A stretch of DNA of 64,000 nucleotides from Macrostomum hystrix (lineage: Eukaryota > Animalia > Platyhelminthes). Position 1 is the stretch's first letter. Every line of letters begins with the position of its first letter. Below the pieces are notes generated by a model that ran no database searches, had not been told where the DNA came from, and was given only the letters and a program-made list of their open reading frames with translations. The DNA is taken from the NCBI GenBank assembly GCA_950097015.1, contig CATNEN010000002.1:1-64000 (forward strand), read 5' to 3'. This document shows, piece after piece, positions 5,883 to 61,912 of the stretch. The position numbers were made by a program, and so were the translations under genes.

Positions 5883-5885
5883 TTC

Positions 5886-31491: not shown

Positions 31492-33117
31492 TCACTCCAT
31501 ATTCAGCACCACCAGTCGACTGTTCAATCTGTCAGCCACCACCAGCTGCTCGCGCGCGCCTCCCGTCAGCACCGCCAGACCGCATGGACGCTTGAATCTG
31601 CCGACACCGCTGCCGCTCTCGCCCGGCACCCCCAGAGTCCACAGCAGCGACCCGTCGTCGGCAGCCACCGCTCGCACTGAGTGACCATTCAACTCACTCA
31701 CGAACAGGCGGCCTCTCCTGTCCACGGCCACACCCACTGGCTCAGTAAACTTTTTGAGGCCGCAACGCTCAGTCGGGTGCGAGGCGACCACCTGCTGGGT
31801 GTCAATGCGCACTCTGTGCACCTGATTCTGCTTACAGTCTGTCACCAGAATGCAGTTGCTGTGAACCACCAGGTTGTCCAGTCTAGCAGAAGGAAACTCA
31901 GTCAGCGTGATGACCGTCTCCATCTCGCCAGTCGCTTTGCTGAATGCAACAATTTTGTTGCCACCAGACACAAACACGGAGGCTGCGTTGCCGCCGATTC
32001 CAAAGATGACAAGAAAGCCCTCGATTCGTGGTTCGATTCGACGCACCTTTCGACCGCTCAGGTCCGTCACTGTCACTGCGTCAACTTGAGCAATGAACAG
32101 CAGCTGACGGTCGCAGTGAAGACCAAAGATCCACTTCTTCCAGTCGATGTCGCAGTGGCACCGCAGCTTCTTCGAGCCGTCCACAGACACCACCTGAAGG
32201 TGGTCCTTGTCACTAATTGATGAAAATGATGCGAAGATGCAGGGCTGAGGCAGAGCCTCACCGCCGTCACTCGCTGACTCGGCGGCCACCACACGGCCTG
32301 AGCGGTCACCAACGAATCCGCTGGTGTCGCTGCACACCGCCAGCCACTCAACCCAGCCATCCAGCTTCACTTCATGACTGAACACGATCGGATCGAACAA
32401 TGCCTGTCTCGCCATCGCCTTAAGGCGATTCTTCACTGCGTCGTCGATCTCCTCGGGTGTCGCGCTGACCTCAGCGTCTCTCCAGCCCTCACCAGTCCAC
32501 ACGTTCACACGAGCCAACGCTCTGCCGAACTGCTCCGACACCTGCCCCAGTCGATCCAGCTGCTGCTCCGCTCCCAAACTCTCCTCCAGCGACTTCTGCA
32601 GCCGATCAAAGTCCGCCTTCAAGTCATCGAGCGACAACTCCATCGACATCGTCAGCTCGACAAGCTTCGACATCTCGCCTGCAGCCTCCGCCATCGACGT
32701 CTCCTGCCTGTAGCTTCTCACATCGTCCATGTCCCGCTGCCACACACGCGCTGTCTCAATCCGAGCTATCATCGGACCTGTCAGTCGATCTTCACTCGAA
32801 TCCAGGTATCTCCGCATTGTCTCATATAGCTGCTTCGCCCGTCGCAGCTGCTCCTCCATCTCGTGAATCCAATCTCCTCCACCACCTGCTGCACTGCCGC
32901 CTGCAGCTTCGGCTTGTGGGAAGGCACGCAGCTTCTCAGCGACCTTCTCCTTCAGCTTGAGGGCATCCGCCACATCAACACTCAGGTGTTCCGAGCACAG
33001 GTAGTGCTCGGAAAACGGACCCAGGCCGACTGCAGCTTTTTGGCAGACGACGCAGATTGGAATCACTTCAGGAGGTCCTTCGGAACTCGAGCTGTCGCTG
33101 GAGTCTCCACGCTGCAT
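31492..33117 (-). CDS. Zn-finger / coiled-coil / NHL propeller protein, copy A3 (541 aa)
   Basis: Intact ORF; flanks match copies A1 and A5. Confidence 0.88.
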
Positions 33118-33984
33118 TTTCAGATTCGAGGTCTGCAAAGAGAGTCGGAAAGAGGCCGTGTGAGTTGACGACTGCTGTTGGAATCTGCCAGAACTCTAAT
33201 ATTATCTCAGTGTCAAAAATGCTCAACTTCAACTCGCTACCTCAGAAAGCTGGGAAGCAGAAAAGTTGCAGAGCTGCCGTAAGCAGGCCGATGCTGAGGC
33301 TCAGGTGAGAATGAGTTTCAATCAGACAGCAGTCGGAAGCTGTGCTCAAGAGTCTGAGATGACTCTCATGTAAGCTAGGTGTCTCAGTTAAACTCTTCTC
33401 CGTTGCCATGGAAACAGTGAGAAGCCTGAGTCTGGTCGATATAGAGAACAGAATGAAATCCTTGAGTCGCTCTGCTCCGGCAGCTCAGTTTGTCGGCAAA
33501 AGACAGTGAGAGTGAAATCTGTTTTTGTTTATTCTCGGTCGAACGCGAATTCAAAATGCTTTCTGTGGCTGCGTGCATTTCTCTGCGGCTGGGACAGAGA
33601 GGGCCGGCTCTGAGCAGCATTAAGCACAGCTGAGCACCCACCTCTGCCTCCAACTGCTCACAATGGGAGCGTAGATTGGGTGAGTGTACTCAAATGCATT
33701 GTTTGTGCACTTAGCTGTGCCATCTTGAGCCCAAAGTACGACCCGAGACATTGTGGCTCTGCTTGTCAGACACTTTCTGACAGATCCGAGCGGTTAGAGA
33801 GGCGATCGACCTGTTAGAGTAGGGAAAAACAACAGGCCAGCAGTTCAAGACGTTGGAAAAATCTCATATTTACTTTTTTGTCTGATATTAGCCTCATCAG
33901 CTCACCTACCATTAGCCTCATCAGCTCACATTAGCTTCATGAGCTCAAATTAGCCTCATCAGCTCACATTAGCTTCATGAGCTT

Positions 33985-35250
33985 GAAATGGTTAGGTGTT
34001 TTGCAAGCCGATGACCGCCCTCGTGAAAGATAGGAGTGTGGAAAACGACGGTAGAGTCGGAGGTCGATCGCGCTGCTGCCGCGAGTTGTCGCGGAGAGGA
34101 ATGAGACGAAGGGAGGGATGAAGGGAGAGATGAAGGGAGAGATGAGGCGGTACAAAGGATGCAGGGAGTGGTCCTATTGGCCTTAGGCTGGCCAGTCCCA
34201 CTCGTCCCATAGGCCACAGGCATGACTGCCGTGCCTACCCCTAGCAATGCTCGAACCCGGCTAAAAGTCTAAAGTGAGGTGTAGGACTATCCGTAAACAG
34301 ATAGGACAGGGCTAGAGAGCCTACTGTCGTCAGTAGCATGTAAATAACCGACTCCTAACCTTGGTAGCGGTGGTCGAAACGGCCCAGGCTCTTGTCACAG
34401 AAATGCGGAAAGGCTATTGGCAAAGCGGAAAAAGATCTCGGGTAGCGCCACCACCCAATGCGCCTACGTTGCCACCGCAGACATTTGGGAACTTGGGTCC
34501 CCGGAGTACACAGCTCCCAGTTCATCACACAGATCTAGACAAGCCGAAAAAAAGGGCATTCTGCAACTTCCGTTTTAGACTGGGGTGAGAACCCCAGAAT
34601 GGATCGAGACACGCCTCAACAGGGGATTCCTGAATTCGCGCTACAGGGGTCTAGAGAGGTGGTACTAAGAACTCGAATGAAAATCCATAGCCAGAATCCT
34701 ACTCATGAAACATCAGGCACATTCCGTACATTAGATTGCAGCCTACACATTAGGTAACTAACAAATCCAAATCTGTGTGAGATGAGGAAATCAGAGGCAG
34801 GAGAGATTAGGCAGAACACTGGCTGAGTGATTACGCAAGCGAAAGACTATTTAGACCTCGCTCCCGCCCCTGTGGCGGTAGTTGCGAGAGGAGGGGGGAA
34901 GAAGGGGAACTCCATTGGCAAGGGAGTTTGACACGTACCCCTTTGATCTGCCGGGGAGAGAGAGAAGCCCGCCAAGGAATTCCCCACCCCTAGCAGAGAA
35001 ACACATGCTACACTCCGCATTTTGCTCACAAATCCCTAGCTCCATATTACTCTTGTGCGCGCTCACAGTTGTCTTCCTGCCGCAGCCTTCGGCTCGGCAT
35101 CACCAGAGCCCACCCCCTAGGAGATTAGCCACTCATCTCTGAGGGCCGTCTAATAGATAAAATAAACATAGAGAATAAAGCAGAGAGGATTTAAATTGTT
35201 ATTAAAGATTTGCCTATGGTTAAAGATTTGGCGATAGTAGTGCTAATTTA
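33985..35250. other. Unique ~1.27 kb block replacing the ~1.1 kb segment found at this position in the other two units
   Basis: Homology to 62730+ stops inside the 19-bp minisatellite (~33984) and resumes at ~35254 (matching ~7093); no recognisable ORF. Confidence 0.6.
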
Positions 35251-38339: not shown

Positions 38340-40412
38340 CGCCTCCTTACGGGGCCTGCCGCTGCAGAGGATCGTCTGGTCTTCTCCTTCTTCTTCCGCT
38401 ATGTCTTGGGCACTCCCATCTCTTTCTCCCTTCCTCACTCCACTTTGCCCTCCAGCTGGCCGTTACGCCGACGCATCGGAGGTGGCACCATTTTCCCGAA
38501 ACGGCACACTCGATGCCTTCTCGTGTAACCGGCTTTTTCGCACTCAAAGCAGGGTCCTTTTCCTTGCTCTCCTCTCGTGTCGGTCTTCTCTGTCACCGTC
38601 TTTCTCGTTCCTCCCCTTTGGCCTGGGATTCTTACGTTTCTACCGTGCGTCTGGTGATCTCCCTCTCTCTCCTCCCGGGCCTCGCTTCGCGCTCTTCTTG
38701 TTGTTTGCTTCGCTGGTTGCGAAACACAAAGTCGCATTCTCTTTGCTTCCATTGTCTCCGTCGTTCTTTTTCCTTTGCTTTCGTCTCACCTTTGGCATAC
38801 TTTCAGGTGTTTGCTGATATTGCTGGTGCTGAAGACTTTTAGGCAGTATGTGCACTGGCCTGGTTGGGGTGCTCCTCGGCACGCCTTCCTGTGGTTCGTC
38901 AGGTTGCTTTGTTGTTTAAAGCTTCTCTTACACCTTTCGCATTCGAATCTCGATTCCATCCTCCTGTGTGCTAGTCTCTGGTGTTGCACTAGTCCGACCT
39001 TCGTTCGGAATCGTCTCCCACAGCCTGGCCAGTCGCATTCCTCCATTGCCTTCTGGCCGCTCCCGTCTTGTTTGTCCTTCCTTTTCTTGTCTTCTCGTTC
39101 TCCTGTCGCTGTTTTCGCTTTGCCTTTTCCTCTTCCATCATCCGCTTCGTCTCCTTCCTGCACACTTCTTTCCACTTCTTCCTATCCATAGCCGTCTGTT
39201 CAATCTTGTCCGCGTCCATGCCCGCACGTCGCAGCAGTCCTCTCCAGTACGTCAGAGTGGTGGCCCGCCGACTCTTCCTTTTCCTCGCTCCACTAGGGCG
39301 CTTCGGCCATCCTAGGATCACTTCTTCGTTATCCTGTTCTCGTCCATTCGGATTACGTGTCCAATTCTCTCCAGCGTTCTTCTCGTGATCTTGACTTCCA
39401 CCGGTTCTACCTCCAACATTCCTCTCACATCATGCATGTTCACGCCCTTTGCTTCCATCTGCCGCAGTCCTGGGCCACCTTTCTTGTCCATCCACACATA
39501 CCTGTAGCACCTATCCATCTGTTGCTGCATTCTCTTGATTTCCGTCTTCCACCATGGTCTCGCCGCTGTTCTGTTCCTCCATCTCCGTTCTGTACTCATC
39601 GAGTGCTATTTCACCATAGCCCCACAAGGGTTGATAGCCGCATATCAGACGGTAGTGGTTCACTTTTATTGCTGCTGTCCTTTCGCCTAACCATCGTTGG
39701 CTTCCTTGTTCGATCCAGTCTTGCGCCCACTCTCCGATTAAGAGGATTGCTGCTCGTTTGCCATGCATTACTACTGCTTTCTCCTCGCCTTCGCCTAGCC
39801 AGAAGAAACCTTGGTCTGCGCTGGTTATCTCTGTCAGCAGCACAGCGTTCCAGTTCATCCTCGTGCTGTATGTCACTATCTCCCGAATTCTTCTCCGATT
39901 GTTCTCCCGCATAGATGCTTTCTGCACGTTCCATGTTGCTATTTTGGGGCTTCTCTTCTTTTTCTCCTCTAGTTTCTCATTTTCCTTCTTCGCTTCTGCT
40001 TCCCTCTTCTCCTCTTCCTTACGTCTTCGTCTCCGTTCTCTCCTCTGTCGTCTCACGTCATTCCGGTATTCGCGTTGCTTCTCTATGTTCCTTTTTCCGC
40101 GTTTGCTAGGTCCCGGGTTCTTCTTAACTGTCTCCAGTTTCTCTTCGATCTCTTCTTCTAGTCTATTTACGTCCTCCACGACCTTCCTTCCTCTCTGCAG
40201 ATTAGGGCGGCAGGTTTTTAAGTGTCGACTGGGGGTGCCCTGTCTCCCAGCTCCACTGTCGCAGGCCGGTCGTCCCCGCGTGCAGTGGCTGTTGCCTTCC
40301 GCCGCGGCTCCTCCCGGTCCACCTCCGGATCTTTTTGCCATTGCTGGAGTGGGGCTCAGTCCACTCCGCGTAGCGCGCTCTCCGCTTCAAGCAAGCAGAT
40401 CCGTCGGATAGC
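38340..40412 (-). mobile_element. Internally deleted RTE-like non-LTR retrotransposon, copy 2 (retains PHD-like 3' end)
   Basis: Same APE N-terminus, post-RT region and C2H2 fingers as copy 1, plus ECAVSGKWCHLRC...WECPRH. Confidence 0.82.
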
Positions 40413-41065
40413 CTCCTCCTCCTCCTTCCTCCTCCTTCCTCCTCCTTCCTCCTCCTCCTCCTCCTTCCTCCTCCTTCCTCCTCCTTCCTCCTTCCTTCCT
40501 TCTCCTCCCTCCTTCCTCCTTCCTCCTTCCTCCTCCCTCCCTCCTCCTTCCTCCTTCCTTCCTTCTCCTCCCTCCTTCCTCCTTCCTCCTCCCTCCTTCT
40601 GCCTTCTCCTCCTCCTCCCTCCCTTCCTCCTTCCTCCTTCCTCCTTCCTCCTTCGTCCTCCTTCCCCCCTTCTCCTTCCTCCTCCCTCCTTCCTCCTCCT
40701 CCTCCTCCCTCCCTTCCTCCTTCCTCCTTCCTCCTTCGTCCTCCTTTCCCCCTTCTCCTTCCTCCTTCCTTCCTCCATCCTCCTCCTTCCTCCTTCTCCT
40801 TCCTCCTCCTCCTTCCTTCTTTTTTATTCCTTCCTTCTCCTCACTCCTTCCTCCTTCCTCCTTCCTCCTTCCTCCTCCTTCCTCTTCCTTCCTCCTCCTT
40901 TCTCCTCCTTTCTCCTCCTTCCTCCTTCCTTCCTCCTTCCTTTCTCCTCCTTCCTCCTTCCTCCTTCCTCCCTCCTCCTTCCTCCTTCCTTCCTCCTTCT
41001 CCCCCTTCATTTCTCTTCCTTCCTCCTTCCTTCTCCTCCTCCTCTTTCCTCCTCCTTCGTCTTTC
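40413..41065. repeat. (TTCCTCC)n-like tract
   Basis: C/T-only low complexity. Confidence 0.95.
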
Positions 41066-41413
41066 CTCCAATAACATTCCAAAAAACAAAACAAAAACAA
41101 ATTGCAACAATGATACGCTATATTGTCATATTTTATCATACCTATGCTTAATTACCATACATTTATTGACATCTTCAATACAATAGAACAAATTGTTCCT
41201 CTCTTAGAACTTCACACACATAAACAAAAGAGCCTATTGACCGAACCACTCCTGCAAAGAAGGAGGAAGGAGGAAGGAGGAAGGAGGAAGGAGGAAAGAG
41301 GAGAAAGGAAGGAGGAAGGAAGAGGAAGGAGGAGGAAGGAGGAGGAAGGAGGAGGAAGGAGGAGGAAGGAGGAGAAAAGAGGAGAAACGAACTACTCTAC
41401 TCTCACTGACGAC

Positions 41414-43026
41414 TCACTTCACATTCAGCACCACCAGTCGCTTGTTCCTATAGTCAGCAACCACCAGCTGCTCGCGCGCACCTCCAGTCACCACCGCCAG
41501 ACCACATGGACAACAGAGTCTCCCGTCACCGCTGCCGCTCTCGCTTGGCACCCCCAGAGTCCACAGCAGCGACCCGTCGTCTGCAGCCACCGCTCGCACT
41601 GAGTGACCATCGAATTCACTCACGAACAGGCGGCCTCTCCTGTCCACGGCCACACCCGCTGGCCGAGCAAACTCTTTGAGGCCGCAACGCTCAGTCGGGT
41701 GCGAGGCGACCACCTGCTGGGTGTCAATGCGCACTCTGTGCACCTAATTCTGCTTCCAGTCTGTCACCAGAATGCTGTTGTCGTGAACCACCAGGTTGCC
41801 CAGTGTAGCAGCAGGAAACTCAGTCAACGTGATGACCGTCTCCATCTCGCCAGTCGCTTTGCTGAATGCAACAATTTTGTTGCCACCAGACACAAACACG
41901 GAGGCTGCGTTGCCGCCGATTCCCTCAATGGCACGAAAGCCCTTGATTTGTGGTTCGATTCGACGCACCTTTCGACCGCTCAGGTCCGTCACTGTCACTG
42001 CGTCCTCTTGAGCAATAAACAGCAGCTGACGGTCGCAGTGAAGACCGCAGGTGTACTTCTTCCGGTCGATGTCGCAGTAGCACCGAAGATTCTTCGAGCC
42101 ATCAACAGACACCACCTGAAGGTGGTACTTGAAATCGAATGATTAAATGATGCGAAGATGCAGGGCTGAGGCAGAGCCTCACCGCCGTCACTCGCTGACT
42201 CGGCGGCCACCACACGGCCTGAGCGGTCACCAACGAATCCGCTGGTGTCGCTGCACACCGCCAGCCACTTAACCCAGCCATCCAGTTTCACTTCATGACT
42301 GAACACGATCGGATCGAGCAATGCCTGTCTAGCCATCGCCTTCATTGCATCGTCGATCTCCTCGGGTGTCGCGTTGAGCTCAGCGTCTCTCCAGCCCTCA
42401 CCAGTCCACACGTTCACACGAGTCAACGCTCTGCCGAACTGCTCCGACACCTGCCCCAGTCGCTCCAGCTGCTGCTCCGCTCCCAAGCTCTCCTCCAGCG
42501 ACTTCTGCAGCCGATCAAAGTCCGCCTTCAAGTCATCGAGCGACAACTCCATCGACATCGTCAGCTCGACAAGCTTCGAAATCTCGCCTGCAGCTTCCGC
42601 CATCGACGTCTCCTGCCTGTAGCTTCTCACATCGTCCATGTCCCGCTGCCACACACGCGCTGTCTCAATCCGAGCTATCATCGGACCTGTCAGTCGATCT
42701 TCACTCGAATCCAGGTATCTCCGCATTGTCTCATACAGCTGCTTCGCCCGTCGCAGCTGCTCCTCCATCTCGTGAATCCAATCTCCTCCACCACCTGCTG
42801 CACTGCCGCCTGCAGCTTCGGCTTGTGGGAAGGCACGCAGCTTCTCAGCGACCTTCTCCTTCAGCTTGAGGGCATCTGCCACATCAACACTCAGGTGTTC
42901 CGAGCACAGGTAGTGCTCGGAGAACGGACCCCGGCCGACTGCAGCTTTTTGGCAGACGACGCAGATTGGGTTGGCTTCAGGAGGTCCTTCGGAGCTCGAG
43001 CTGTCGCTGGGGTCTCCACGCTGCAT
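41414..43026 (-). pseudogene. NHL gene copy B4, pseudogene
   Basis: 1-bp deletion at ~42144 relative to B2 (gattaaatga vs gatgaaaatga) and CAG>TAG nonsense at 41744-41746; otherwise colinear with B2. Confidence 0.88.
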
Positions 43027-44010
43027 TTTCAGATTCGAGGTCTGGAAAGAGAGTCGGAAAGAGGCCGTGTGAGTTGAAGACGGCTGCTGGAATCTGCCAG
43101 AACTCTAATATTATCTCAGTGTCAAAAATTCTCAACTTCAACTCGCTACCTCAGAAAGCTGTGAAGCAGAAAATTTGCAGAACTGCCGTAAGCAGGCCGA
43201 TGCTGAGGCTCAGGTGAGAATGAGTTTCAATCAGACAGCAATCGGAAGCTGTGCTCAGGATTTTGAGATGACTCCTATGTCAGGTATCTCAGTTAAACTC
43301 TACTCTGTTGCTAAGCAACAGTGAGAAGCCTGAGTCTGGTCGATATTGGAGAACAGAATGAAATCATTGAGCTGCTATTGCTGGAGTGACAGGAGGAGAG
43401 GAGACGGGAAGGAGAAGGAGGAAAGAGTACCTGATACAAAGGACGCGCAGGTAGAACATCAGTTAATGTAGTGCGTGGGGTGTGCAGTGCCTGAGTGTAC
43501 AGTTCCAATTGCATTGCTCCCGCCTCTACATGCATTGTAATTTTTTCTCCTTGACGCATACTTGGACTCAGTGGAGATGTCAGTGCGTGTCAGGTGAAGC
43601 AGTGGGTGTCAGGTGAATCAGCGGGTGTCAGGTAAAGCAGTGGATGTCAGGTGAATCGGTGGGTGTCAGGTGTAGCAGTGAGTGTCAGGGTAAGCAGTGG
43701 GTATCAGATGAATCAGTCAGAGGAAGCAGTGAGTGTCAGGTGAAGCCGCGGGTGTCAGGATATTTACCTTCTAGACTGGAGATTCCCCATTTAGGGAGAT
43801 TTTCCTGTGAGACTGAATATTCACATGTTAGATATGGCTGTCACCTGTTAGATATGGCTGTCACCTGTTAGATATGGCTGTCACCTGTTAGATATGGCTC
43901 TAAATCAAAACATCGAATGCAGCAGAACCAGTTACACCTACTTGCTGAATTCCAGCTGCATCAAAATAAGCTCAGACTCAGGTTCAGAGACAAATCAGAA
44001 AACCAATTTT

Positions 44011-44637
44011 TGTGCCGTCTGCGAAAAAGCCGCAGTCGGCCGGGATCCGTTCTCCGAGTGCTAGCTGTGCTCGGAACACCTGAGTGTTGAGGTGGCGGAT
44101 GCCATCAAGCTGAAGAACCATGTTGATGAGGAGCTGAGTGCCTACTCTCAAGCCGAAGCTGCAGGTGTGCCGGATGTCAGGCGGAATCTGCTTCAAAGAA
44201 TGCTCAAGCGAAATGCCGTTGTGGTTAAGGCCTTCAATAACATTCACCAAAGCCTTCATTCGCACCGCTCTCTTCTGACAGACTTCATGAATGCTCGAGT
44301 TGAGACAGCCAATGCTTGGCAGCGGGAGCTCGAAGACATCGAAAGTTACAAAGAGGAGGTCGCGGAGGCTGGCCTTGTCCATGGACTTGTCGCTTCCGGA
44401 GCTAAAGGCGGACTTTGATCGGGCGCAGAAGTTGGTTGACAATCGGAAGTCGAGCAGCAGCTGGAGCGACTGCCCGACTCGAGAATCTCGTGGACCGAGT
44501 TGCGGCTGCTGAAGTCGGGACTGTGGCATCCAGAGACGCTGCAGTCACCGCGAGACCGAAGGTGGTTGATTGCGCAACAAGTGACGACGGCTCCGTCTTC
44601 GATCGGAGTGAAACTGGACGGTCACGTGTACGGTCAA
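44011..44637 (+). pseudogene. Inverted truncated NHL paralog, copy 2
   Basis: [34 protein letters not shown]...VKLDGHVY with an in-frame TAG. Confidence 0.82.
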
Positions 44638-45382
44638 CAGAAACCTGCTCTATACATTTAGCCTAGGAAATCATCAGTTGGTCTGTGAGACCCTAAGAAT
44701 GGCGAGTACTAAATAACCCTATGAGAACAGACTCTGTCCCAAGTGCCGGTAGAAGTAGCGAATGATATAACACTTGCTGTTTAAGTCTTAGCAAGATTTT
44801 CAGGTATCGGGAAGAGACACGGAGACAATAAGCAATATAATTCCCAATCTTCCCAATTATCAGACGCGGATAAGGCATTCTACTTGATGACCAAAGAAGA
44901 TAAATTTGTGAAATCAATTGTTGTTCAGTACATTGTGAAAATAGACAAGATTATGGTTGGCTAAACGGCTGCTCTAGCCAACACTTGCCAACATTAAAAG
45001 CGCATTCGATTTATAAGATACTTTGCAGATTTCCAATTTGTGAAATTGAAACTAGTAAGCTGCTGAAACTTACCGGCCTATGGTAATCTGGCCTCATGGT
45101 CTCAGGAAAACTCAAATAAATAAAGGAGTGAATCGAATAGTAAGTCACAGAGTGAATCGCAGAGTGAATCGAATAGTAAGTCACAGAGTGAATCGCAGAG
45201 TGAATCGCAGAGTGAATCGCAGAGTGAATCGCAGAGTGAATCGCAGAGTGAATCGCAGAGTGAATCGCAGAGTGAATCATTACCGATTGTGAACGCAGAG
45301 TAACAAAAAGAGAGCAGAAGACGAAAGTCAGGAATCGCATTGAGAGCCCGATGTCTAAAGTGAGGTTGTCAGATAACATATT

Positions 45383-45760
45383 AGGGTGTCAGAGAAGGCA
45401 TCAGGGTGTCAGGGAAGGCATCAGGGTGTCAAAGAAGGCATCAGGGTGTCAGAGAAGGCATCAGGGTGTCAGGGAAGGCATCAGGGTGTCAGGGAAGGCA
45501 TCAGGGTGTCAGGGAAGGCATCAGGGTGTCAGGGAAGGCATCAGGGTGTCAGGGAAGGCATCAGGGTGTCAGGGAAGGCATCAGGGTGTCAGGGAAGGCA
45601 TCAGGGTGTCAGGGAAGGCATCAGGGTGTCAGGGAAGGCATCAGGGTGTCAGGGAAGGCATCAGGGTGTCAGGGAAGGCATCAGGGTGTCAGGGAAGGCA
45701 TCAGGGTGTCAGGGAAGGCATCAGGGTGTCAGGGAAGGCATCAGGGTGTCAGGGTGTCAG
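45383..45760. repeat. 20-bp minisatellite (tcagggtgtcagggaaggca), ~18 copies
   Basis: Tandem units; only ~2.5 units at 19635-19690. Confidence 0.93.
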
Positions 45761-53167: not shown

Positions 53168-54826
53168 ATGGACACGCCGCGATTCAAGGATCTCTCCGAT
53201 GTGCTGCAGCTGCGCAAGCAGGGCCAGAGCATGTCCACCTCCGTACAGGCCACAACCACCCTGTGGCTGACTACAGTCTCCGTGTTGGGCATCGTTGGCA
53301 ACGCCCTGGTGATCATGTTCTTTTCCAGAAGCCTGAAAGATCTGCCCCAGAATGTCTACGTGATCGCTCTGGCAGCCCTTGACTTGGTCGTCTGCGCGGT
53401 GGTTATTCCGTCGACAATCTATCAGGACGTCTGGCTGGCTTCTAGCAGCGACCTGGGCTGCAAGCTGTTCAACATTCTCCGCTACTCTCTGGTTCCATCG
53501 TCTGCATTTTTGCTGTGCCTCATCGCCGTTGATCGCTTCGTCATCATCTGCTTCGTGCCGGGCATCCAGTCGACAAGGAAGAACTCGCTGCTGTACATCG
53601 GCCTGGTTCTGGTGCTGGGCTTCGCTCTCGGTGTTCCTGGCGGACTGACAACCGGAGCCAGCGTGCGCATCACCGTGGATGCCGCAGTCAGCAAGTTCAA
53701 TGGCGACTTCAGCGTCTCTCACTGTACCTCGGATTTCAGCATAATCTCAGAGTCGGTCTACAAGGTCTATCGCACAATGCTCACCGCAATTTTCTCCGTC
53801 ATGCTGCTCCTCCTGGTGTTTTTCTACGCCAACATTTTCTGCTTTGTCCGCAAGCGCCAGCAACGCTGGGCAAAGTCGCGCAGCTACTTGGCCTCCAAGA
53901 TGGAGCGAAGCGGCGGCAACACTGCCGAGCTCGGCGGCACCAAGGGTCGACGGTGGCTGCTGAACCGCCGCTGGAGCGCAGGCTATGGCGTCGGCGGCGT
54001 CGGCGGGCGCAACACGCGGCGTCTCCTGTCTGTGGGCCGTCTGGACGAGGTGACGGAAGTGACGAGCTGCACTGAGGCCAGGCGAGCGTCAGTGAACTTG
54101 CCACGCTTCGACCAGCCTGGCCAGTCATCATCCGAATGCCTTGAGACCGACATAGACGAAGCCCTGGCCGCCTCCTCACCGGTGAAAAATGCTTTCCAGA
54201 AGCGAATTTCGGAGGTTTCAGAACAGACCAGCTCAGCTGGCCAGGCTGCTGAGATCGAGGGTGCTGACGCCATCGAGCTCAGCGTGATGCTCAGTCCCAG
54301 CATGACGGACTGCGATTCGCAGTCGCGTCCCAACCGCATCAACTCGCTGGCCAGTGAGCACCTGACTCAGGCCCGACAGGACTTGGCCGAGCGCACGCGG
54401 AAGCGGCCCCACATCAAGACCGCCAAGGTGCTCGGCGTCATCACCTTCTTCTACGTGTTGTCCTACCTGCCATTCTTTCTAGTTTACAACTTTAACAAAT
54501 CGGTGAGCGAAGGCGTCACGGGCCGTTGGATGGTAGAGACGGGCAACTTCTCGGCAGGCAAGTCCATCGACGCCTGGCCAGAGAGGCACAACAGCAGCGC
54601 GTGGGCATTCAGCTTCGACTCAGCTGTCGCCGGCGATGATGTGAGCGGTGGCGTCGGTGGCGGCAGTGACAGTGAAGCGTCGGTCTATCACCAGGCGGTG
54701 AAGGTGATGTTCTATTTTTACTTCATCAATCATGGAGCCAATCCGCTGATCTATGGCTGCATGAACACCTATTTCAAGCAGCAGGTGTGCGCCCTCATTG
54801 GCTCGCTGAGGTGTCGAAGGAGGTGA
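53168..54826 (+). CDS. Class A GPCR, copy 2 (552 aa)
   Basis: Same 7TM motifs; 5 visible amino-acid differences from copy 1. Confidence 0.92.
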   Translation: MDTPRFKDLSDVLQLRKQGQSMSTSVQATTTLWLTTVSVLGIVGNALVIMFFSRSLKDLPQNVYVIALAALDLVVCAVVIPSTIYQDVWLASSSDLGCKLFNILRYSLVPSSAFLLCLIAVDRFVIICFVPGIQSTRKNSLLYIGLVLVLGFALGVPGGLTTGASVRITVDAAVSKFNGDFSVSHCTSDFSIISESVYKVYRTMLTAIFSVMLLLLVFFYANIFCFVRKRQQRWAKSRSYLASKMERSGGNTAELGGTKGRRWLLNRRWSAGYGVGGVGGRNTRRLLSVGRLDEVTEVTSCTEARRASVNLPRFDQPGQSSSECLETDIDEALAASSPVKNAFQKRISEVSEQTSSAGQAAEIEGADAIELSVMLSPSMTDCDSQSRPNRINSLASEHLTQARQDLAERTRKRPHIKTAKVLGVITFFYVLSYLPFFLVYNFNKSVSEGVTGRWMVETGNFSAGKSIDAWPERHNSSAWAFSFDSAVAGDDVSGGVGGGSDSEASVYHQAVKVMFYFYFINHGANPLIYGCMNTYFKQQVCALIGSLRCRRR

Positions 54827-55129: not shown

Positions 55130-58100
55130 ATCCTTCCTATCCTATCCTATCCTTCCTTCCTCCTTCCTCCGTCTTCCTTCCTTCTCCTCACTCCTTCCTC
55201 CTTCCTCCGTCTTCCTTCCTTCTCCTCACTCCTTCCTCCTTCTCCCTCCTCCTTCCTCCTCCTTCCTCCTTGCTTCCTTCTCCTTCCTCCTCTTTCCTAC
55301 TCCTTCCTCCTTCTTCCTTCCTTCCTCCTTCCTCCTCCTTCCTCCTTCCCCCTTCCTCCATCCTCCCTCCTCCTTCCTCCTCCTTCTCCTTCCTCCTTTC
55401 TTCCTCATTCCTTCCTCCTCCTTCCTTCCTCCTCCTTCCTCCTTCCTTCCTCTTTCCTCCTTCCTTCCTCCTTCCTCCTTCCTTTCTCCTTCCCCCTTCC
55501 TCCTTCCTTCTCCTTCCTCCTCCTTCCTCCTTCCTTTCTCCTTCCCCCTTCCTCCTTCCTCCCTCCTCCTCCTTCCTCCTTCCTTTCTCCTTCCACCTTC
55601 CTCCTTCCTCCCTCCTCCTCCTTCCTCCCTCCTTCTTCCTCCTTCCTTCCTCCTTCCCCCTTCCTCCTCCTTCCTCCTTCCTCCTCCTTCCTCCCTCCTT
55701 CCTCCTTCCTCCTTCCTTCCTCCTTCCCCCTTCCACCTTCCTTCCTCCTTCCTCCTTCCTCCTTCCTCCTCCTTCCTTCCTTTCTCCTTCCTTCCTCCTT
55801 CTTCCTCCTTCCTCCTTCCTCCTTCCTCCTTCCTTCCTCCTTCCTCCTCCTTCCTCCTTCCTCCTTCCTCCTTCTTCCTCCTACTTCCTCCTCCTTCCTC
55901 CTTCCTCCTTCCTCCTTCCTCCTTCCTCCTCCTTCCTCCTTCCTCCTTCCTTCCTCCTTCCTTCCTCCTCCTTCCTCCTTCCTCCTTCCTCCTCCCTCCT
56001 TCTTCCTTCCTTTCTCCTTCCCCCTTCCTCCTTCCTCCTCCTTCCTCCTCCTTCCTCCTTCCTCCTTCCTCCTTCCTCCTTCCTCCTCCTTCCTCCTTCC
56101 TCCTTCCTCCTTCCTCCTCCTTCCTCCTTCCTCCTTCCTCCTTCCTCCTTTCTTCCTTCTCCTTCCTCCTCCTTCCTCCTTCCTCCTTCCTTCCTCCTTC
56201 CTCCTTCTTTCCTCCTCCTTCCTCCTCCTTCCTTCCTCCTCCTTCCTCCTCCTTCCTCCTTCCTCCTTCCTCCTTCCTTCCTCCTCCTTCCTCCTCCTTC
56301 CTCCTCCTTCCTCCTTCCTCCTTCCTCCTCCTTCCTCCTTCCTCCTTCCTCCTTCCTCCTTCCTCCTTCCTTCCTCCTCCTTCCTCCTCCTTCTTCCTCC
56401 TTTCTCCTTCCTCCTTTCTCCTTCCTCCTTCCTCCTCCTTCCTCCTTCCTCCTTCCTTCCTCCTTCCTCCTTCCTCCTTCCTCCTTCTTCTTTCCTCCCT
56501 CCTCCTCCTTCTCCTCCCTCCTTCCTCCTTCTTCTTTCCTCCCTCCTCCTCCTTCTCCTCCCTCCTTCCTCCTTCCTCCTTCCTCCTCCTTCCTCCTTCC
56601 TCCTTCCTCCTTCCTCCTTCCTTCCTCCTCCTTCCTCCTTCCTCCTTCCTCCATTCTTCCTCCTCCTTCCTCCTTCCTCCTTCCTCCTCCTTCCTCCTTC
56701 CTCCTTCCTCCTTCCTTCCTCCTTCCTCCTTCCTCCTTCCTCCTTCTTTCCTTCTCCTTCCTCCTCCTTCCTCCTCCTTCTTCCTCCTTTCTCCTTCCTC
56801 CTTTCTCCTTCCTCCTTCCTCCTTCTTCCTCCTTCCTCCTTCCTTCCTCCTTCCTCCTTCCTCCTTCCTCCTTCCTCCTTTCTTCCTCCTCCTTCCTCCT
56901 CCTTCCTCCTTCCTCCTTCCTTCCTCCTTCCTTCCTCCTCCTTCCTCCTCCTTCCTCCTTCCTTCCTCCTTCCTTCCTCCTCCTTCCTCCTCCTTCCTCC
57001 TTCCTCCTTCCTCCTCCTTCCTCCTTCCTCCTTCCTCCTCCTTCCTCCTTCCTCCTTCCTCCTTCCTCCTCCTTCCTCCTTCCTCCTTCCTCCTTCCTCC
57101 TTCCTTCCTCTTTCCCCTTCATCCATCCTCCCTCCTCCTTCCTCCTCCTTCTCCTTCCTCCTTCCTCCTTCCTCCTCCTTCCTCCTTCCTCCTTCCTCCT
57201 TCCTCCTCCTTCCTCCTTCCTCCTTCCTCCTTCCTCCTTCCTCCTTCCTCCTTCCTCCTTCCTCCTCCCTCCTTCCTCCTTCCTCCTCCTTCCTTCTCCT
57301 TCCTTCCTCCTTCCTCCTTCCTCCTTTCCCCTTCCTCCTTCCTCCTTCCTCCTCCTTTCTCCTTCCTCCTTCCTCCTCCTTCCTACTCCCTCCTCCTTCC
57401 TCCTTCCTCCTTCCTCCTCCTTCCTCCTTCCTCCTTCCTCCTTCCTTCTTCCTTCCTTCCTCCTTCCTCCTTCCTTCCTCCTCCTTCCTCCTTCCTCCTT
57501 CCTCCTCCTTCCTCCTTCCTCCTTCCTCCTTCCTTCCTCCTTCCTCCTTCCTCCTTCCTCCTTCCTCCATCCTTCCTCCTCCTTCCTCCTCCTTCTTCCT
57601 CCTTTCCCCTTCCTCCTTCCTCCTTCCTCCTCCTTCCTCCTTCCTCCTCCTTCCTCCTTCCTCCTTCCTCCTCCCTCCTTCCTCCTCCTTCCTCCTTCCT
57701 CCTTCCTCCTTCCTCCTTCCTCCTCCCTCCTTCCTCCTTCCTCCTTCCTTCCTCCTTCCTTCCTCCGCCTTCCTCCTCCTTCCTCCTTCCTCCTTTCCCC
57801 TTCCTCCTTCCTCCTTCCTCCTCCTTTCTCCTTCCTCCTTCCTTAATTCTCTTTCTTCCTTCCTCCTCCTTTCTCCTTCCTCCTTCCTTCCTTCTCTTTC
57901 CTCCTCCTTCCTCCATCCTCCTCCATCCTCCTTCCTCCTTCCTCCTTCCTCCTCCTTCCTCCTTCCTCCTTCCTCCTTCCTCCTTCCTTCCTCCTTCCCC
58001 CTTCATCCATCCTCCCCCCTCCTTCCTCCTCCTTCTCCTTCCTCCTTCCTCCTTCCTCCTCCTTCCTCCTTCCTCCTTCCTTCCTCCTCCTTCCTCCTTC

Positions 58101-59975
58101 CTCATTCCTCCTCCTTCCTCCTTCCTTCCTCCTCCTTCCTCCTCCTTCCTCCTACCTCCTTCCTTCCTCCTTCCTTCCTCCTCCTTCCTCCTCCTTCCTC
58201 CTTCCTCCTTCCTCCTCCTTCCTCCTTCCTCCTCCTTCCTCCTTCCTCCTTCCTCCTTCCTCCTTCCTCCTTCCTCCTCCTTCCTCCTTCCTCCTTCCTC
58301 CTTCCTCCTTCCTCCTCCCTCCTTCCTCCTTCCTCCTTCCTCCTTCCTCCTCCCTCCTTCCTCCTTCCTCCTCCTTCCTCCTTCCTCCTTCCTTCCTTCT
58401 CCTTCCTCCTCCTTCCTCCTTCCTCCTTCCTTCCTCCTTCCTACTTCTTTCCTCCTCCTTCCTCCTCCTTCCTTCCTCCTCCTTCCTCCTCCTTCCTCCT
58501 TCCTCCTTCCTTCCTTCTCTTTCCTCCTTCCTCCTCCTTCCTCCTTCCTCCTCCTTCCTCCTTCCTCCTTCCTCCTTCCTCCTTCCTTCCTCCTCCTTTC
58601 TCCTTCCTCCTTCCTTCCTTCTCCTTCCTCCTCCTTCCTTCCTCCTCCTTCCTCCTTCCTCCTTCCTCCTTCCTCCTTCTTCCTCATTCCTCCTTCCTCC
58701 TTCCTCCTTCCTTTCTCCTTCCTTCCTCCTCCTTCCTCCTCCTTTCTCCTTCCTCCTCCTCCTTCCTCCTTCCTCCTTCCCCCTTCCTCCTTCCTCCTTC
58801 CTCCTCCTTCCTCCTTCCTCCTTCCTTCCTTCTCCTTCCTCCTCCTTTCTCCTTCCTCCTTCCTTCCTTCTCTTTCCTCCTTCCTTCCCTCTTTCCTCCT
58901 CCTTTCTCCTTCCTCCTTCCTCCTTCCTCCTTCCTCCTTCCACCTTCCTCCTTCCTCCTTCCTCCTTCCTCCTTCCTCCTACCTCCTTCCTCCTTCCTCC
59001 TCCCTCCTTCCTCCTTCCTCCTTCCTTCCTCCTCCTTCCTCCTCCTTCTTCCTCCTTTCTCCTTCCTCCTTTCTCCTTCCTCCTTCCTCCTCCTTCCTCC
59101 TTCCTCCTTCCTTCCTCCTTCCTCCTTCCTCCTTCCTCCTTCCTCCTTCCTTCCTCCTCCTTCCTCCTCCTTCCTCCTTCCTCCTTCCTTCCTCCTTCCT
59201 TCCTCCTCCTTCCTCCTCCTTCCTCCTCCTTCCTCCTCCTTCCTCCTTCCTCCTTCCTCCTCCTTCCTCCTTCCTCCTTCCTCCTTCCTCCTTCCTCCTC
59301 CTTCCTCCTTCCTCCATCCTCCTTCCTCCTTCCTCCTCCCTCCTTCCTCCTTCCTCCTTCCTTCCTCCTTCCTTCCTCCTCCTTCCTCCTCCTTCCTCCT
59401 TCCTCCTTCCCCCTTCCTCCTTCCTCCTTCCTCCTCCTTCCTCCTTCCTCCTTCCTTCCTTCTCCTTCCTCCTCCTTTCTCCTTCCTCCTTCCTTCCTTC
59501 TCTTTCCTCCTTCCTCCTCCTTTCTCCTTCCTCCTTCCTCCTCATTCCTTCCTTCTCCTCCCTCCTTCCTCCTTCCTCGTCCTTCCTTCTTCCTCCTTCC
59601 TCCTTCCTCCTTCCTCCTTCCTCCTTCCTCCTTCCTCCTCCTTCCTTCCTTTCTCCTTCCTTCCTCCTTCTTCCTCCTTCCTCCTTCCTCCTTCCTCCTT
59701 CCTTCCTCCTTCCTTCCTCCTCCTTCCTCCTTCCTCCTTCCTCCTTCCTCCTTCTTCCTCCTACTTCCTCCTCCTTCCTCCTTCCTCCTTCCTCCTTCCT
59801 CCTTCCTCCTCCTTCCTCCTTCCCCCTTCCTTCCTCCTTCCTTCCTCCTCCTTCCTCCTTCCTCCTTCCTCCTCCCTCCTTCCTCCTCCTTCCTCCTTCC
59901 TCCTTCCTCCTCCTTCCTACTCCCTCCTCCTTCCTACTCCCTCCTCCTTCCTACTTCCTCTTCCTCCTTCCTCCA
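55130..59975. repeat. ~4.85 kb (TTCCTCC)n-like tract
   Basis: Pure C/T tract; replaces the ~550 bp unique segment plus ~1 kb tract of the first unit. Confidence 0.97.
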
Positions 59976-60292
59976 TTCGAAAAAACATTCCAAAAAACAA
60001 ATAACAAATGGCAAAATGTAACAATGACACTTTTCTTTCCTTCTTCCTCTTTTCTCGAAAAACATTCCAAAAAACAAATAACAAAAACAAATAACAAAAG
60101 GCTACAATGATACGCTATATTGTCATATTATATCATACCCATGCCTAATTACCACATACGTCTATTGACATATTCAATCAAATACTACTAATTGTTCCTC
60201 TCGTTAAAACTTCAAACGCATAAATAAAAGACCCTATTCACCGAAACACTCCTGCAAAGTCTCTGCTTCATCTACGCTCACTCACTGACGAC

Positions 60293-61912
60293 TCACTCCA
60301 TATTCAGCACCACCAGTCGCTTGTTCACATAGTCAGCCACCACCAGCTGCTCGCGCGCGCCTCCCGTCACCACCGCCAGACCGCATGGACCATTGAATAT
60401 GCCGTCACCGCTGCCGCTCTCGCCCGGCACCCCCAGAGTCCACAGCAGCGACCCGTCGTCGGCAGCCACCGCTCGCACTGAGTCACCACTCCACTCACTC
60501 ACGAACAGGCGGCCTCTCCTGTCCACGGCCACACCCATTGGCCCAGCAAACTCTTTGAGGCCGCAACGCTCAGTCGGGTGCGAGGCGACCACCTGCTGGG
60601 TGTCAATGCGCACTCTGTGCACCTGCTTCTGCTTCCAGTCTGTCACCAGAATGCAGTTGTCGTGAATCGCCAGGTTGCGCAGATCAGCATCAGGAAACTC
60701 ATTCAGCGTGATGACCGTCTCCATCTCGCCAGTCGCTTTGCTGAATGCAACAATTTTGTTGCCACCAGACACAAACACGGAGGCTGCGTTGCCGCCGATT
60801 CCCTCAATGGCACGAAAGCCCTTGATTTGTGGTTTGATTCGACGCATCTTTCGACCGCTCAGGTCCGTCACTGTCACTGCGTCAACTTGAGCAATGAACA
60901 GCAGCTGACGGTCGCCGTGAAGACCCCAGATGTCCCTCTTCCAGTCGATGTCGCAGTGGCACCGCAGCTTCTTCGAGCCGTCCACAGACACCACCTGAAG
61001 GTGATTCTTGCCATCGAATGATGAAAATGATGCGAAGATGCAGGGCTGAGGCAGAGCCTCACCGCCGTCACTCGCTGACTCGGCGGCCACCACACGGCCT
61101 GAGCGGTCCCCAACGAATCCGCTGGTGTCGCTGCACACCGCCAGCCACTTAACAAGACCATCCAGCTTCACCTCGTGACTGAACACAATCGGATCGAACA
61201 ATGCCTGTCTCGCCATCGCCATCGCCTTAAATGCGTCGTCGATCTCCTTGGGTGTCGCGCTGACCTCAGCGTCTCTCCAGCCCTCACCAGTCCACACGTT
61301 CACACGAGCCAACGCTCTGCCGAACTGCTCCGACACCTGCCCCAGTCGCTCCAGCTGCTGCTCCGCTCCCAAGCTCTCCTCCAGCGACTTCTGCAGCCGA
61401 TCAAAGTCCGCCTTCAAGTCATCGAGCGACAACTCCATCGCCATCGTCAGCTCGACAAGCTTCGACATCTCGCCTGCAGCTTCCGCCATCGACGTCTCCT
61501 GCCTGTAGCTTCTCACATCGTCCATGTCCCGCTGCCACACACGCGCTGTCTCAATCCGAGCTATCATCGGACCTGTCAGTCGATCTTCACTCGAATCCAG
61601 GTATCTCCGCATTGTCTCATACAGCTGCTTCGCCCGTCGCAGCTGCTCCTCCATCTCGTGAATCCAATCTCCTCCACCACCTCCTGCACTGCCACCTGCA
61701 GCTTCGGCTTGAGGAAAGGCACGCAGCTTCTCAGCGACCTTCTCCTTCAGCTTGAGGGCATCCGCCACATCAACACTCAGGTGTTCCGAGCACAGGTAGC
61801 GCTCGGAGAACGGACCCAGGCCGACTGCAGCTTTTTGGCAGACGACGCAGATTGGAATCACTTCAGGAGGTCCTTCGGAACTCGAGCTGTCGCTGGAGTC
61901 TCCACGCTGCAT
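60293..61912 (-). CDS. Zn-finger / coiled-coil / NHL propeller protein, copy A5 (539 aa)
   Basis: Intact ORF; NHL repeats [19 protein letters not shown] and IFNGPCGLAV...ADYVNKRL. Confidence 0.88.
   Translation of the reverse strand: MQRGDSSDSSSSEGPPEVIPICVVCQKAAVGLGPFSERYLCSEHLSVDVADALKLKEKVAEKLRAFPQAEAAGGSAGGGGGDWIHEMEEQLRRAKQLYETMRRYLDSSEDRLTGPMIARIETARVWQRDMDDVRSYRQETSMAEAAGEMSKLVELTMAMELSLDDLKADFDRLQKSLEESLGAEQQLERLGQVSEQFGRALARVNVWTGEGWRDAEVSATPKEIDDAFKAMAMARQALFDPIVFSHEVKLDGLVKWLAVCSDTSGFVGDRSGRVVAAESASDGGEALPQPCIFASFSSFDGKNHLQVVSVDGSKKLRCHCDIDWKRDIWGLHGDRQLLFIAQVDAVTVTDLSGRKMRRIKPQIKGFRAIEGIGGNAASVFVSGGNKIVAFSKATGEMETVITLNEFPDADLRNLAIHDNCILVTDWKQKQVHRVRIDTQQVVASHPTERCGLKEFAGPMGVAVDRRGRLFVSEWSGDSVRAVAADDGSLLWTLGVPGESGSGDGIFNGPCGLAVVTGGAREQLVVADYVNKRLVVLNME

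Follow-up and report, generated by a model that had tools for sequence, protein, structure and literature searches.

Hypervariable WD40 propellers have been described in the HNWD family of Podospora anserina, the NLR genes that include het-d and het-e (Paoletti et al. 2007, PMC1805685; Chevanne et al. 2010, PMC2873952). The genes analyzed here, which we call A genes, resemble the HNWD genes in forming a beta-propeller multigene family in which positive diversifying selection acts on a few positions of the interaction surface, and in the continual exchange of sequence within and between loci, pseudogenes included. They differ in having an NHL rather than a WD40 propeller, in lacking a NACHT/NLR part and RIP, and in their animal host. 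Moreover, the A family trades tracts of whole-gene paralogs, whereas HNWD genes trade single near-identical repeats.

The closest propeller fold is that of the TRIM-NHL proteins (Brat, Mei-P26, LIN-41/TRIM71, TRIM2/3, and Thin/TRIM32), in which, as in the A proteins, a zinc motif is followed by a helical region and a C-terminal NHL domain. In contrast to them, the A proteins have neither a RING nor a Pfam-detectable B-box, and while TRIM-NHL proteins are conserved single-copy regulators, the A family is lineage-specific, tandemly amplified, and hypervariable on one face. The TRIM expansions of vertebrates in which the B30.2/SPRY loops vary, namely TRIM5alpha and the fish finTRIM genes (PMC3137616), share with the A family clustered young duplicates, a cytoplasmic protein with a zinc motif and a coiled coil that is putative in the A proteins, and a C-terminal recognition domain with diversifying surface loops, but that domain is SPRY and not NHL, and the A proteins lack the RING. 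An antiviral function is established for TRIM5 and is putative at most for the A family.

The A genes are also like the MHC: binding-site codons are far more diverged than nearby silent or intron-like sequence, motifs are shared as a patchwork, dN exceeds dS at contact codons only, and old binding-site variants appear together with homogenised flanks and short-tract conversion. Unlike the MHC, the variation lies among paralogs of one inbred genome and not among alleles, and fold and cellular compartment are different. Hypervariability of one surface, an excess of nonsynonymous over silent change, and exchange between paralogs, which characterize HNWD- and MHC-like diversifying families, were all found in the A family.

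The gene array and the NHL-propeller family

The window analyzed is a 64-kb stretch of Macrostomum hystrix DNA (contig C2:1-64000), in which all five A copies share a homologous duplicon of about 2.0 kb (self-BLAST). Repeat structure was determined by masked BLAST with satellite filters; an unmasked self-comparison was swamped by CT-rich satellites. The features are as follows.

1322-2959, minus strand: A1, intact; third copy at the module position of A3 and A5, adjoining the satellite that opens the contig
14664-16283, minus strand: A2, intact A gene within unit 1
31492-33138, minus strand: A3, intact gene with the shared MQRGD start codon at 33117 (ORF list, Pfam NHL)
32503-33117, minus strand: N-terminal part of A3 with zinc knuckle and putative coiled coil
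31495-32502, minus strand: NHL propeller of A3 (Pfam NHL, AF2, Foldseek)
31471-33466, minus strand: A duplicon at A3, about 2.0 kb, with its A5 counterpart at 60272-62260 (self-BLAST blocks)
33139-33466, minus strand: non-coding upstream part of the A3 duplicon
41392-43047, minus strand: A4, pseudogene twin of A2 within unit 2
60293-61933, minus strand: A5, intact, at A3's position in the next module; MQRGD start at 61912
60296-61297, minus strand: propeller of A5
27883-29541, plus strand: GPCR copy 1, rhodopsin family, 552 aa from the first Met (Pfam 7tm_1, E = 2e-29)
53168-54826: GPCR copy 2
30420-31402: (CCTTCCT)n satellite by A3, beginning about 90 bp 3' of the A3 stop codon
1-1100 (A1), about 13150-14300 (A2), 40412-41069 (A4), and 55131-59978 (A5): counterparts of this satellite
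12249-13079, minus strand: truncated LINE-like ORF, the neutral control of the first-pass annotation, with a twin at 39511-40341
19655-21256, plus strand: LTR-retrotransposon pol fragment (RNase H and integrase), a neutral clock block, with a twin at about 45700-47900

The module order is the same at A3 and A5: GPCR, (CCTTCCT)n satellite, A gene, right flank. The satellite is homopurine, (GGAAGGA)n, on the A-gene strand and adjoins 12 of 18 paralogs. Of the A copies in the window, all but A4 are intact ORFs of 539-548 codons with orderly hypervariable loops; A4 has lost one nucleotide near 42148 and has a premature TAG near 41744. On the right-hand side of the A genes, the modules are unlike each other in the structure of their DNA (3798-7087, 33983-35247, and 62745-62838). 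The LINE-like ORF at 12249-13079 had no Pfam match and resembles a piece of a truncated LINE endonuclease. Two divergent stretches (22.4-23.5 and 24.3-24.9 kb), considered as further hypervariable genes, proved to be dispersed purine-rich satellites with periods of 14-15 nt.

The A genes form a family specific to Macrostomum, of which at least 14 close copies are intact; pseudogenes and fragments also occur. The proteins lack a signal peptide; in them, a short Cys2-Cys-His knuckle is followed by a long stretch that is helical and coiled-coil-like, and then by an NHL propeller of six blades. Pfam NHL scored above the gathering cut-off in A1, A2, and A3 (E 2e-7 to 1.6e-4), and the propeller of the A3 AF2 model has a pLDDT of about 90. 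Its best Foldseek matches in the PDB were the NHL domains of Thin, TRIM2, TRIM3, TRIM71, and Mei-P26 (6xg7, 7b2r, 7qrw, and 8j72; target TM 0.75-0.79), and like the TRIM-NHL proteins, it forms a six-bladed C-terminal NHL beta-propeller. A RING finger was absent from the Pfam results for A1, A2, A3, and A5, also when the N-terminal 230 residues were searched with E relaxed to 10, and just 21 residues precede the first Cys pair; the B-box model PF00643 was likewise not matched in these 230 residues at E up to 10. Conservation of the zinc motif C22-x2-C25 ... C41-x2-H44 between two Macrostomum species is 90% or more, and the M. lignano homologs bear the database name 'B box-type domain-containing protein'. 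Between zinc motif and propeller, AF2 predicts long helices at 42-72, 82-146, and 149-208 with a pLDDT of just 30-65. A literature search for Macrostomum together with NHL, and for hypervariable NHL propellers, returned nothing relevant.

Divergence of A3 and A5 and of their co-duplicated neighbors

The first-pass annotation had placed A3 and A5 at the same position of the tandem unit, had counted about 4 of 220 N-terminal and about 41 of 300 propeller differences between them, and had concluded that their propellers diverged beyond the age of the duplication. Our results agree on each point. Both genes lie in the GPCR-satellite-A order, and they differ at 4 of 206 N-terminal residues (counted from the MQRGD start) and at 45 of about 336 propeller residues plus one 2-residue indel. 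The counts it gave for the co-duplicated controls were exact: the GPCR copies differ at 5 of 552 residues (7 nt, of which 2 are synonymous and 5 nonsynonymous; dS 0.0045), and the LINE-like ORF and its twin at 2 of 276, within a block that is 0.87% diverged. We determined divergence from pairwise global alignments of defined blocks; a multiple alignment containing the satellites was unreliable at its ends. Nucleotide divergence between A3 and A5 was 6.6-7.2% in the propeller, 1.8% in the N-terminal half, and 6.4% (21 differences) in the 328 non-coding bp upstream of the ATG, against a background of 0-1.1% between units 1 and 2 (GPCR block, 0.66%; LTR-element block, 1.09%; 9680-10930, 0 differences in 1250 bp).

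What did not hold was the claim that the propeller alone had outrun the clock. The N-terminal half had an A3-A5 dS of 0.050 and the propeller one of 0.046, both some ten times that of the GPCR (Fisher p = 5e-5). Since the silent sites of both halves and the upstream DNA are equally diverged, the whole 2-kb A duplicon has a deeper history than the surrounding unit, and the N-terminus looks young because purifying selection (omega 0.17, compared with 1.84 for the propeller overall) strips it of amino-acid changes. Windowed divergence was raised only across the duplicon of about 2.0 kb and dropped at about 33412-33466, where homology with A2/A4-type copies ends, from 6.4% to 1.2-2%. An A locus older than the unit together with its flanks, which the annotation had named as evidence against its own reading, is thus nearly what we found: the duplicon has the deeper history, and the flank past 33466 is 1.2-2% diverged.

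The same relation was observed in all 15 pairs among the six GPCR-A modules, where the GPCR diverged by 0.3-0.96% and the silent sites of the A genes by 3.4-6.3%. For comparison of the binding surfaces, we used 48 hypervariable codons out of 342, defined from nine other paralogs. A3 and A5 differ at 33 of these 48, A1 and A3 at 31, and A1 and A5 at 29; the family mean is 31, and intact copies differ at 20-43. The sole similar pair is A2 and the pseudogene A4, which differ at 8 of 48 and show patchy clusters of shared variants; having been duplicated in the same units, this pair is an internal control for simple co-duplication. The framework dS of A3-A5 was 0.033 versus 0.073 for random paralogs, and otherwise the two are no closer than random paralogs. 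Because they are hardly closer than that, there is no proof that they were ever identical.

Shared variants, mosaic tracts and selection on one propeller face

At 86 of the 107 nucleotide differences between A3 and A5 (80%), both states were found in other paralogs, while chance would give 7-16%. The excess over random mutation holds upstream of the gene (16 of 20 against 15% expected; p = 3e-10), in the N-terminal half (8 of 11 against 7%; p = 8e-8), and in the propeller (60 of 72 against 16%; p = 5e-36). At highly variable hypervariable sites, some sharing can be due to chance or convergence, so that these sites are less informative. The shared variants sit in exact mosaic tracts of 40-250 bp. 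The first-pass annotation had proposed a search of the rest of the genome for donors, and this search matched exact tracts to copies on C2 and to A4.

60630-60701, minus strand: A5 tract identical to c2_83k (C2:82967-84613); 12 differences from A3
60707-60823, minus strand: A5 tract identical to pseudogene A4 (exact match of 117 bp) and largely to A2; 7 differences from A3 (p = 0.0015)
60917-61012, minus strand: A5 tract identical to C2:735532-737157; 9 differences from A3 (p = 0.006)
62069-62181, minus strand: A5 non-coding upstream tract identical to C2:951549-953189; 8 differences from A3
32321-32419, minus strand: A3 tract identical to C2:951549-953189; 8 differences from A5

The single-tract p-values are modest once multiple testing is considered. 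In the region 33139-33466, A5 has the haplotype of c2_951k and c2_945k, and the other haplotype is common to A1 and A3. A2 shares its backbone with A4 and contains patches identical to A1, A5, A3, and c2_83k. A GENECONV-like test gave p < 0.05 in 23 of 120 pairs compared with 6 expected, and PHI was significant (p < 0.001), but not when it was restricted to the N-terminal half (p = 0.32) or to third positions (p = 0.15). Incompatibility was high everywhere, and we therefore relied on four-gamete counts and the shared-variant tests in place of PHI on subsets. Rmin was 18 at third positions outside the hypervariable codons and 7 in a 327-bp upstream non-coding stretch. An origin of A3 as a simple NAHR chimera of A1 (5' part) and A5 (3' part) was rejected: the trend was weak, and the 3' 330 nt are still 5.5% from A5.

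Private changes amounted to 0.3-1.1% per copy, about 0.5%, which matches the age of the unit (12 nucleotides in 2164 for A5, 9 for A2, 24 for A1, and about 7 plus one 8-nt indel for A3). The 17-mers around private sites were almost never found in 35 loci, propeller-only fragments included. Of the 33 hypervariable codons at which A5 differs from A3, 31 are present in other copies, and A3 has 12 hypervariable codons that are absent from the 12 other intact paralogs compared. Since 80% of the variants pre-exist and private changes are about 0.5%, the excess of A3/A5 divergence is attributed to exchange among paralogs and not to new mutation.

The differences that remain visible in the protein are concentrated on one surface. 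The hypervariable codons hold 33 of the 45 propeller differences between A3 and A5 (binomial p = 4e-19); 46 of the 48 lie in the propeller, and 42 of these 46 are in alternate, odd-to-even strand loops, which form one face of the AF2 model. Judged from strand order rather than from coordinates, the variable face would be the top face by the usual propeller convention. TRIM-NHL proteins use the top face of the propeller for ligands, and several bind RNA there. By pairwise Nei-Gojobori estimates, A3-A5 showed a dN of 0.59, a dS of 0.16, and an omega of 3.7 at the hypervariable codons, and six disjoint pairs gave 0.372 nonsynonymous changes per site versus 0.054 silent ones (omega about 9; p = 3e-89). 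In a set of six M. lignano paralogs, hypervariability falls in the same columns (p = 6e-15). Diversifying selection at the family level, on one propeller face, is real.

Origin and possible role of the diversity

We hypothesize that most of the A3/A5 gap probably arose through short-tract swapping among copies and selection for differing binding faces, and not through fast mutation. The setting is a young tandem array of GPCR-satellite-A modules, the other parts of which are at most 1% diverged. Ectopic homologous recombination, namely gene conversion and possibly unequal crossing-over, would pass short tracts of tens to a few hundred bp between the 2-kb A duplicon and other family members, with partners that would include the pseudogene A4 and copies 0.7-0.95 Mb away. 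Such exchange would bring in variants that already existed, whether the site is coding, silent, or non-coding. Purifying selection holds the N-terminal half constant, and diversifying selection, probably acting on which shuffled variants persist, would keep copies unlike each other at the putative binding face. The germline would thereby hold a repertoire of propellers with different tips. When and in which direction the exchanges took place, and that selection acts on converted tracts, is what we infer from this pattern. A single genome cannot polarise the exchanges: genes that were duplicated and then overwritten look like old A genes with recently homogenised surroundings.

The latter history seems to us rather unlikely. 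Here, old A paralogs with a silent divergence of about 5% would stand amid GPCR genes, transposon fragments, and even-numbered A copies recently homogenised by unequal crossing-over or long conversion, with exchange points in or beside the A genes or satellites, and arrays in which A copies had grown alike would be removed by selection. It agrees with the family-level A divergence beside little-diverged GPCRs in all 15 module pairs, with the lack of excess similarity of A3 and A5 at hypervariable codons, with the differing right flanks, and with the leaning of the 5' part of A3 to A1 and, slightly, of its 3' end to A5. However, repeated events would have to end at the edges of a 2-kb gene, the chimera that it predicts fails at the last 330 nt of A3, and the short mosaic tracts and the Rmin of 18 at neutral sites need paralog exchange anyway; A2/A4, moreover, is an A gene inside the unit that was co-duplicated and then patched. 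The first-pass annotation had posed a choice between positive selection and replacement from other paralogs. Its second half stood, whereas new point mutations since the duplication, driven by strong positive selection on the propeller, are largely refuted and carry hardly any probability: omega exceeds 1 in the propeller and at its hypervariable codons, and 12 hypervariable codons of A3 were seen in none of the 12 other intact paralogs compared, but silent and non-coding sites are equally diverged, most differences and nearly all of A5's differing hypervariable codons pre-exist in paralogs, and private nucleotides are few.

The assembly was made with canu from PacBio CLR reads and polished with Arrow and then with Pilon using bwa-mapped short reads (PMC10468722), and the array is broken at the satellite between the end of contig C11 and the start of C2. 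Given this assembly, its polishing, and the position at a contig end, some of the mosaicism could be artefactual. That reads of different A copies were mixed within 99%-identical modules to give a chimeric consensus accounting for the whole pattern is nevertheless very improbable: mixing would raise the likeness of copies and not lower it, four of five copies keep intact frames and orderly loops, the published assembly QV is 42.8 (PMC10468722), and the pattern is seen in M. lignano proteins and in copies distant from contig ends as well.

The function of these genes may be the intracellular recognition of variable ligands. Tentatively, the family could comprise germline-encoded, combinatorially shuffled intracellular NHL-propeller receptors for variable targets, for example RNA or protein of viruses or transposons or, in this hypodermic inseminator, molecules that come from the partner. 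The (GGAAGGA)n tract about 90 bp behind most copies could be a recombination-prone promoter of cassette exchange, a role comparable to that of the flanking repeats of other cassette-exchange gene families. To our knowledge, non-vertebrate animals are usually said to have no diversified receptor repertoires, and we know of almost nothing on how flatworms recognize pathogens or parasitic DNA. Here, the NHL propeller, a fold of conserved RNA-binding regulators, serves as a hypervariable scaffold.

The tandem array provides a built-in control, since its neighbors are at most 1% diverged, and points to diversity kept by patchwork exchange and selection for difference. It also calls for caution with 'internal clock' arguments, as the amino-acid identity of a constrained domain hid the deeper history of the whole gene relative to its flanks. 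The variable face stays variable across two Macrostomum species, and because the loops offer well-defined positions for mutation and natural variants are numerous, a hunt for ligands is directly feasible.

Array layout and the age of the A genes

A masked self-comparison of the window, C2:1-64000, revealed a tandem array in the order A1, unit 1, A3, unit 2, A5, where A1-A5 are minus-strand gene copies encoding an NHL propeller and each unit holds an inner A gene, transposon fragments, and a rhodopsin-type GPCR. Past the window the array goes on, with another A copy at C2:82967-84613.

Genes and reference blocks of the array (window positions unless a contig is named)
1322-2959, minus strand: A1, tandem array, before unit 1
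31492-33138, minus strand: A3, between unit 1 and unit 2
60293-61933, minus strand: A5, after unit 2
14664-16283, minus strand: A2, inner A gene of one unit
about 41392-43047, minus strand: A4, inner A gene of the other unit, a pseudogene (1-nt deletion near 42148, TAG near 41744)
27883-29541, 53168-54826, C2:74146, C2:748504, C11:6613816, C11:6637049: rhodopsin-type GPCR copies, five full and one partial, 0.3-0.96% apart
19655-21256, twin about 45700-47900: LTR-retrotransposon pol fragment, spread over two adjacent ORFs with RNase H and integrase domains, used as neutral clock block

Backward, the array almost certainly continues at the end of contig C11, since C11 ends in the satellite of this array right after a GPCR copy and carries one more GPCR-A module. 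The terminal (CCTTCCT)n satellite lies at C11:6638707-6639087, directly after a 99%-identical GPCR copy, and contig C2 opens with the same satellite (window 1-1100). Probably both contig ends belong side by side in a single array that the assembler split at the satellite.

The first-pass annotation had reported that A3 and A5 are nearly identical in the N-terminal half and strongly different in the propeller; its counts are right, our own from the shared start being 4 of 206 and 45 of about 336 residues, respectively. They are right for its controls as well, with 5 of 552 residues different in the GPCR twins and 2 of 276 in those of the LINE-like ORF. Wherever the two units could be aligned outside satellites, they differed by 0-1.1% in substitutions. 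In a windowed nucleotide comparison of A3 and A5, the propeller was 6.6-7.2% diverged and the N-terminal half 1.8%; the 328 bp preceding the ATG stood at 6.4%, and past 33466 the divergence fell back to 1.2-2%. The contrast between GPCR and A gene is not peculiar to this pair: divergence is 0.3-0.96% among the six GPCR copies, while their six adjoining A genes differ by 3.4-6.3% at silent sites and by 6.7-8.8% in the propeller.

The same annotation had taken the N-terminal amino acid identity as the sign of a young gene, a use that the silent sites contradict. For A3/A5, the N-terminal half gave a dS of 0.050 and the propeller one of 0.046, compared with 0.0045 for the GPCR (Fisher p = 5e-5 over the complete ORF and 0.001 when the N-terminal half is taken by itself). 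The young appearance of the N-terminal half is due solely to its omega of 0.17, and the raised dS in both halves indicates that the entire 2-kb duplicon, with its non-coding leader, goes back further than the DNA around it. Thus the propeller divergence does exceed that of the neighbours, as first proposed, but the excess is not confined to the propeller. The GPCR pair in the window carries five nonsynonymous versus two synonymous changes, showing little sign of constraint since duplication.

Diversification of one propeller face

We defined 48 hypervariable codons, mostly in the propeller, from nine paralogs, leaving out A1, A3, and A5. Between A3 and A5, 33 of the 48 are different, versus 12 of 294 framework codons. 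With dN and dS taken separately, dN exceeded dS at the hypervariable codons (0.59 and 0.16), and framework omega was 0.62. A3's twin must be either A1 or A5, depending on the phase of the last duplication, and A3 differs from A1 at 31 of the 48. Across six disjoint pairs, nonsynonymous change at hypervariable codons was 0.372 per site versus 0.054 at silent sites elsewhere in the gene (omega about 9). Among intact close paralogs, every one of the 78 pairs differed at 20-43 of the 48 codons; the sole pair alike at these codons includes a pseudogene. The same columns of the alignment vary strongly among six paralogs of M. lignano.

An AlphaFold model gave a propeller pLDDT of about 90, and the propeller best matched the NHL domains of Thin, TRIM2, TRIM3, TRIM71, and Mei-P26. 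In the model, 42 of 46 hypervariable residues occupy alternate loops of the strand meander, placing them on a single propeller face. Judged by strand order and general knowledge of the fold rather than by coordinates, and with the Pfam NHL motif taken as starting at strand a, these would be the d-a and b-c loops of the conventional top face. Several TRIM-NHL proteins bind RNA through their top face. The TRIM-NHL proteins are nearest to the A family in fold; however, RING is absent from the A proteins and Pfam detected no B-box, so that membership in TRIM-NHL is not supported. The closest database proteins, at 58% identity, are M. lignano "B box-type domain-containing" proteins. Literature searches found nothing linking Macrostomum with NHL, or on hypervariable NHL propellers. 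In logic, the nearest analogue is the fungal HNWD family, in which WD40 propellers are hypervariable, loci exchange sequence, and surface positions are under positive selection (PMC1805685).

Exchange of variants among A copies

In an alignment of 18 family members from the genome, both states were present in other paralogs for 86 of the 107 nucleotide differences between A3 and A5. These shared variants made up 16/20 differences in the upstream non-coding sequence, 8/11 in the N-terminal half, and 60/72 in the propeller, where random new mutation predicts 7-16% (p 3e-10 to 5e-36). Few nucleotides were private to one copy: A5 had 12, A2 had 9, A1 had 24, and A3 had about 7 together with one 8-nt indel; at about 0.3-1.1% per copy, this is roughly what the age of the unit predicts. 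A5 could be reconstructed from 34 segments that match other copies exactly, with 10 bases private to it, and exact tracts of both A3 and A5 were matched in other copies.

Exact tracts of A5 and A3 matched in other copies
60630-60701, A5: copy at C2:82967-84613, 12 differences from A3
60707-60823, A5: pseudogene A4, 7 differences from A3
60917-61012, A5: copy at C2:735532-737157, 9 differences from A3
62069-62181, A5, non-coding: copy at C2:951549-953189, 8 differences from A3
32321-32419, A3: copy at C2:951549-953189, 8 differences from A5

The PHI test was significant for both ORF and propeller (p < 0.001), and 23 of 120 pairs had an unusually long identical run (6 expected). By the four-gamete test, third positions outside hypervariable codons require a minimum of 18 exchanges, and the non-coding leader of 327 bp requires 7. 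A2 and A4 show the picture of simple co-duplication: a common backbone, 8 of 48 hypervariable codons different, and 31 patchy shared-variant plus 23 private differences.

On balance, we favour a combination in which ectopic recombination confined to the A duplicon would let the copies trade pre-existing variants, with the N-terminal half under purifying selection and one face of the propeller under diversifying selection. Of the two options first proposed, replacement from paralogs is supported by the shared variants and exact tracts, and selection on new mutations alone is largely excluded. The main rival has the same ingredients in reverse order, the A genes being old and their surroundings recently homogenised; the two are not separable within one genome. 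An assembly or polishing artefact is an unlikely source of the extra divergence and could contribute to the mosaicism, the window lying at a contig end in an assembly built with CLR reads, Arrow, and Pilon (PMC10468722). New here are a correction of the clock, evidence that the exchange is patchwork, a control spanning the whole array, and a variable face conserved across species.

Satellites, flanks, and fragments

Satellites and propeller-only fragments
30420-31402, 55131-59978, 1-1100, about 13150-14300, 40412-41069: (GGAAGGA)n satellite, nearly pure homopurine on the gene strand
22453-23476, 24468-24905, 26349-26808, 8134-9187, 18619-19527, 45363-45754: other tandem satellites, periods 14, 15, 23, 28, about 12, and 20 nt
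C2:732491-734807, C11:5964458-5964801, C7:9939559-9940168: propeller-only family fragments, 82-90% identical, adjoining intact copies

The (CCTTCCT)n satellite, which reads (GGAAGGA)n on the gene strand, stops about 90 bp short of the stop codon of the A gene that follows. Across the family, 12 of 18 members have such a tract, 0.4 kb to about 5 kb long, setting in about 90-400 bp past the stop codon; it is missing from the C39 copy and from the subgroup at C11:5.26-5.33 Mb. The tract could be a triplex-prone promoter of recombination. The other tandem satellites account for apparent pockets of 7-14% divergence between units, and those of 14-15 nt, which are purine-rich, belong to families dispersed on many contigs. 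The propeller-only fragments may have been left behind by partial duplication, or they may be silent donor cassettes.

Beyond the right flank of the A gene at this module position, the structure differs in every module (3798-7087, 33983-35247, and 62745-62838); these segments of 3.3, 1.3, and 0.1 kb are unrelated or deleted sequence between modules, which suggests repeated breakage or insertion there. Inverted fragments at 17332-17481 and 17721-17788, with twins at 44016-44165 and 44368-44472, match the N-terminal coding region of A at 79-85% identity. They are located upstream of A2 and A4, with others near the C2:945-955 kb copies; the 0.8 kb around them is 3.2-3.4% diverged between units, above background.
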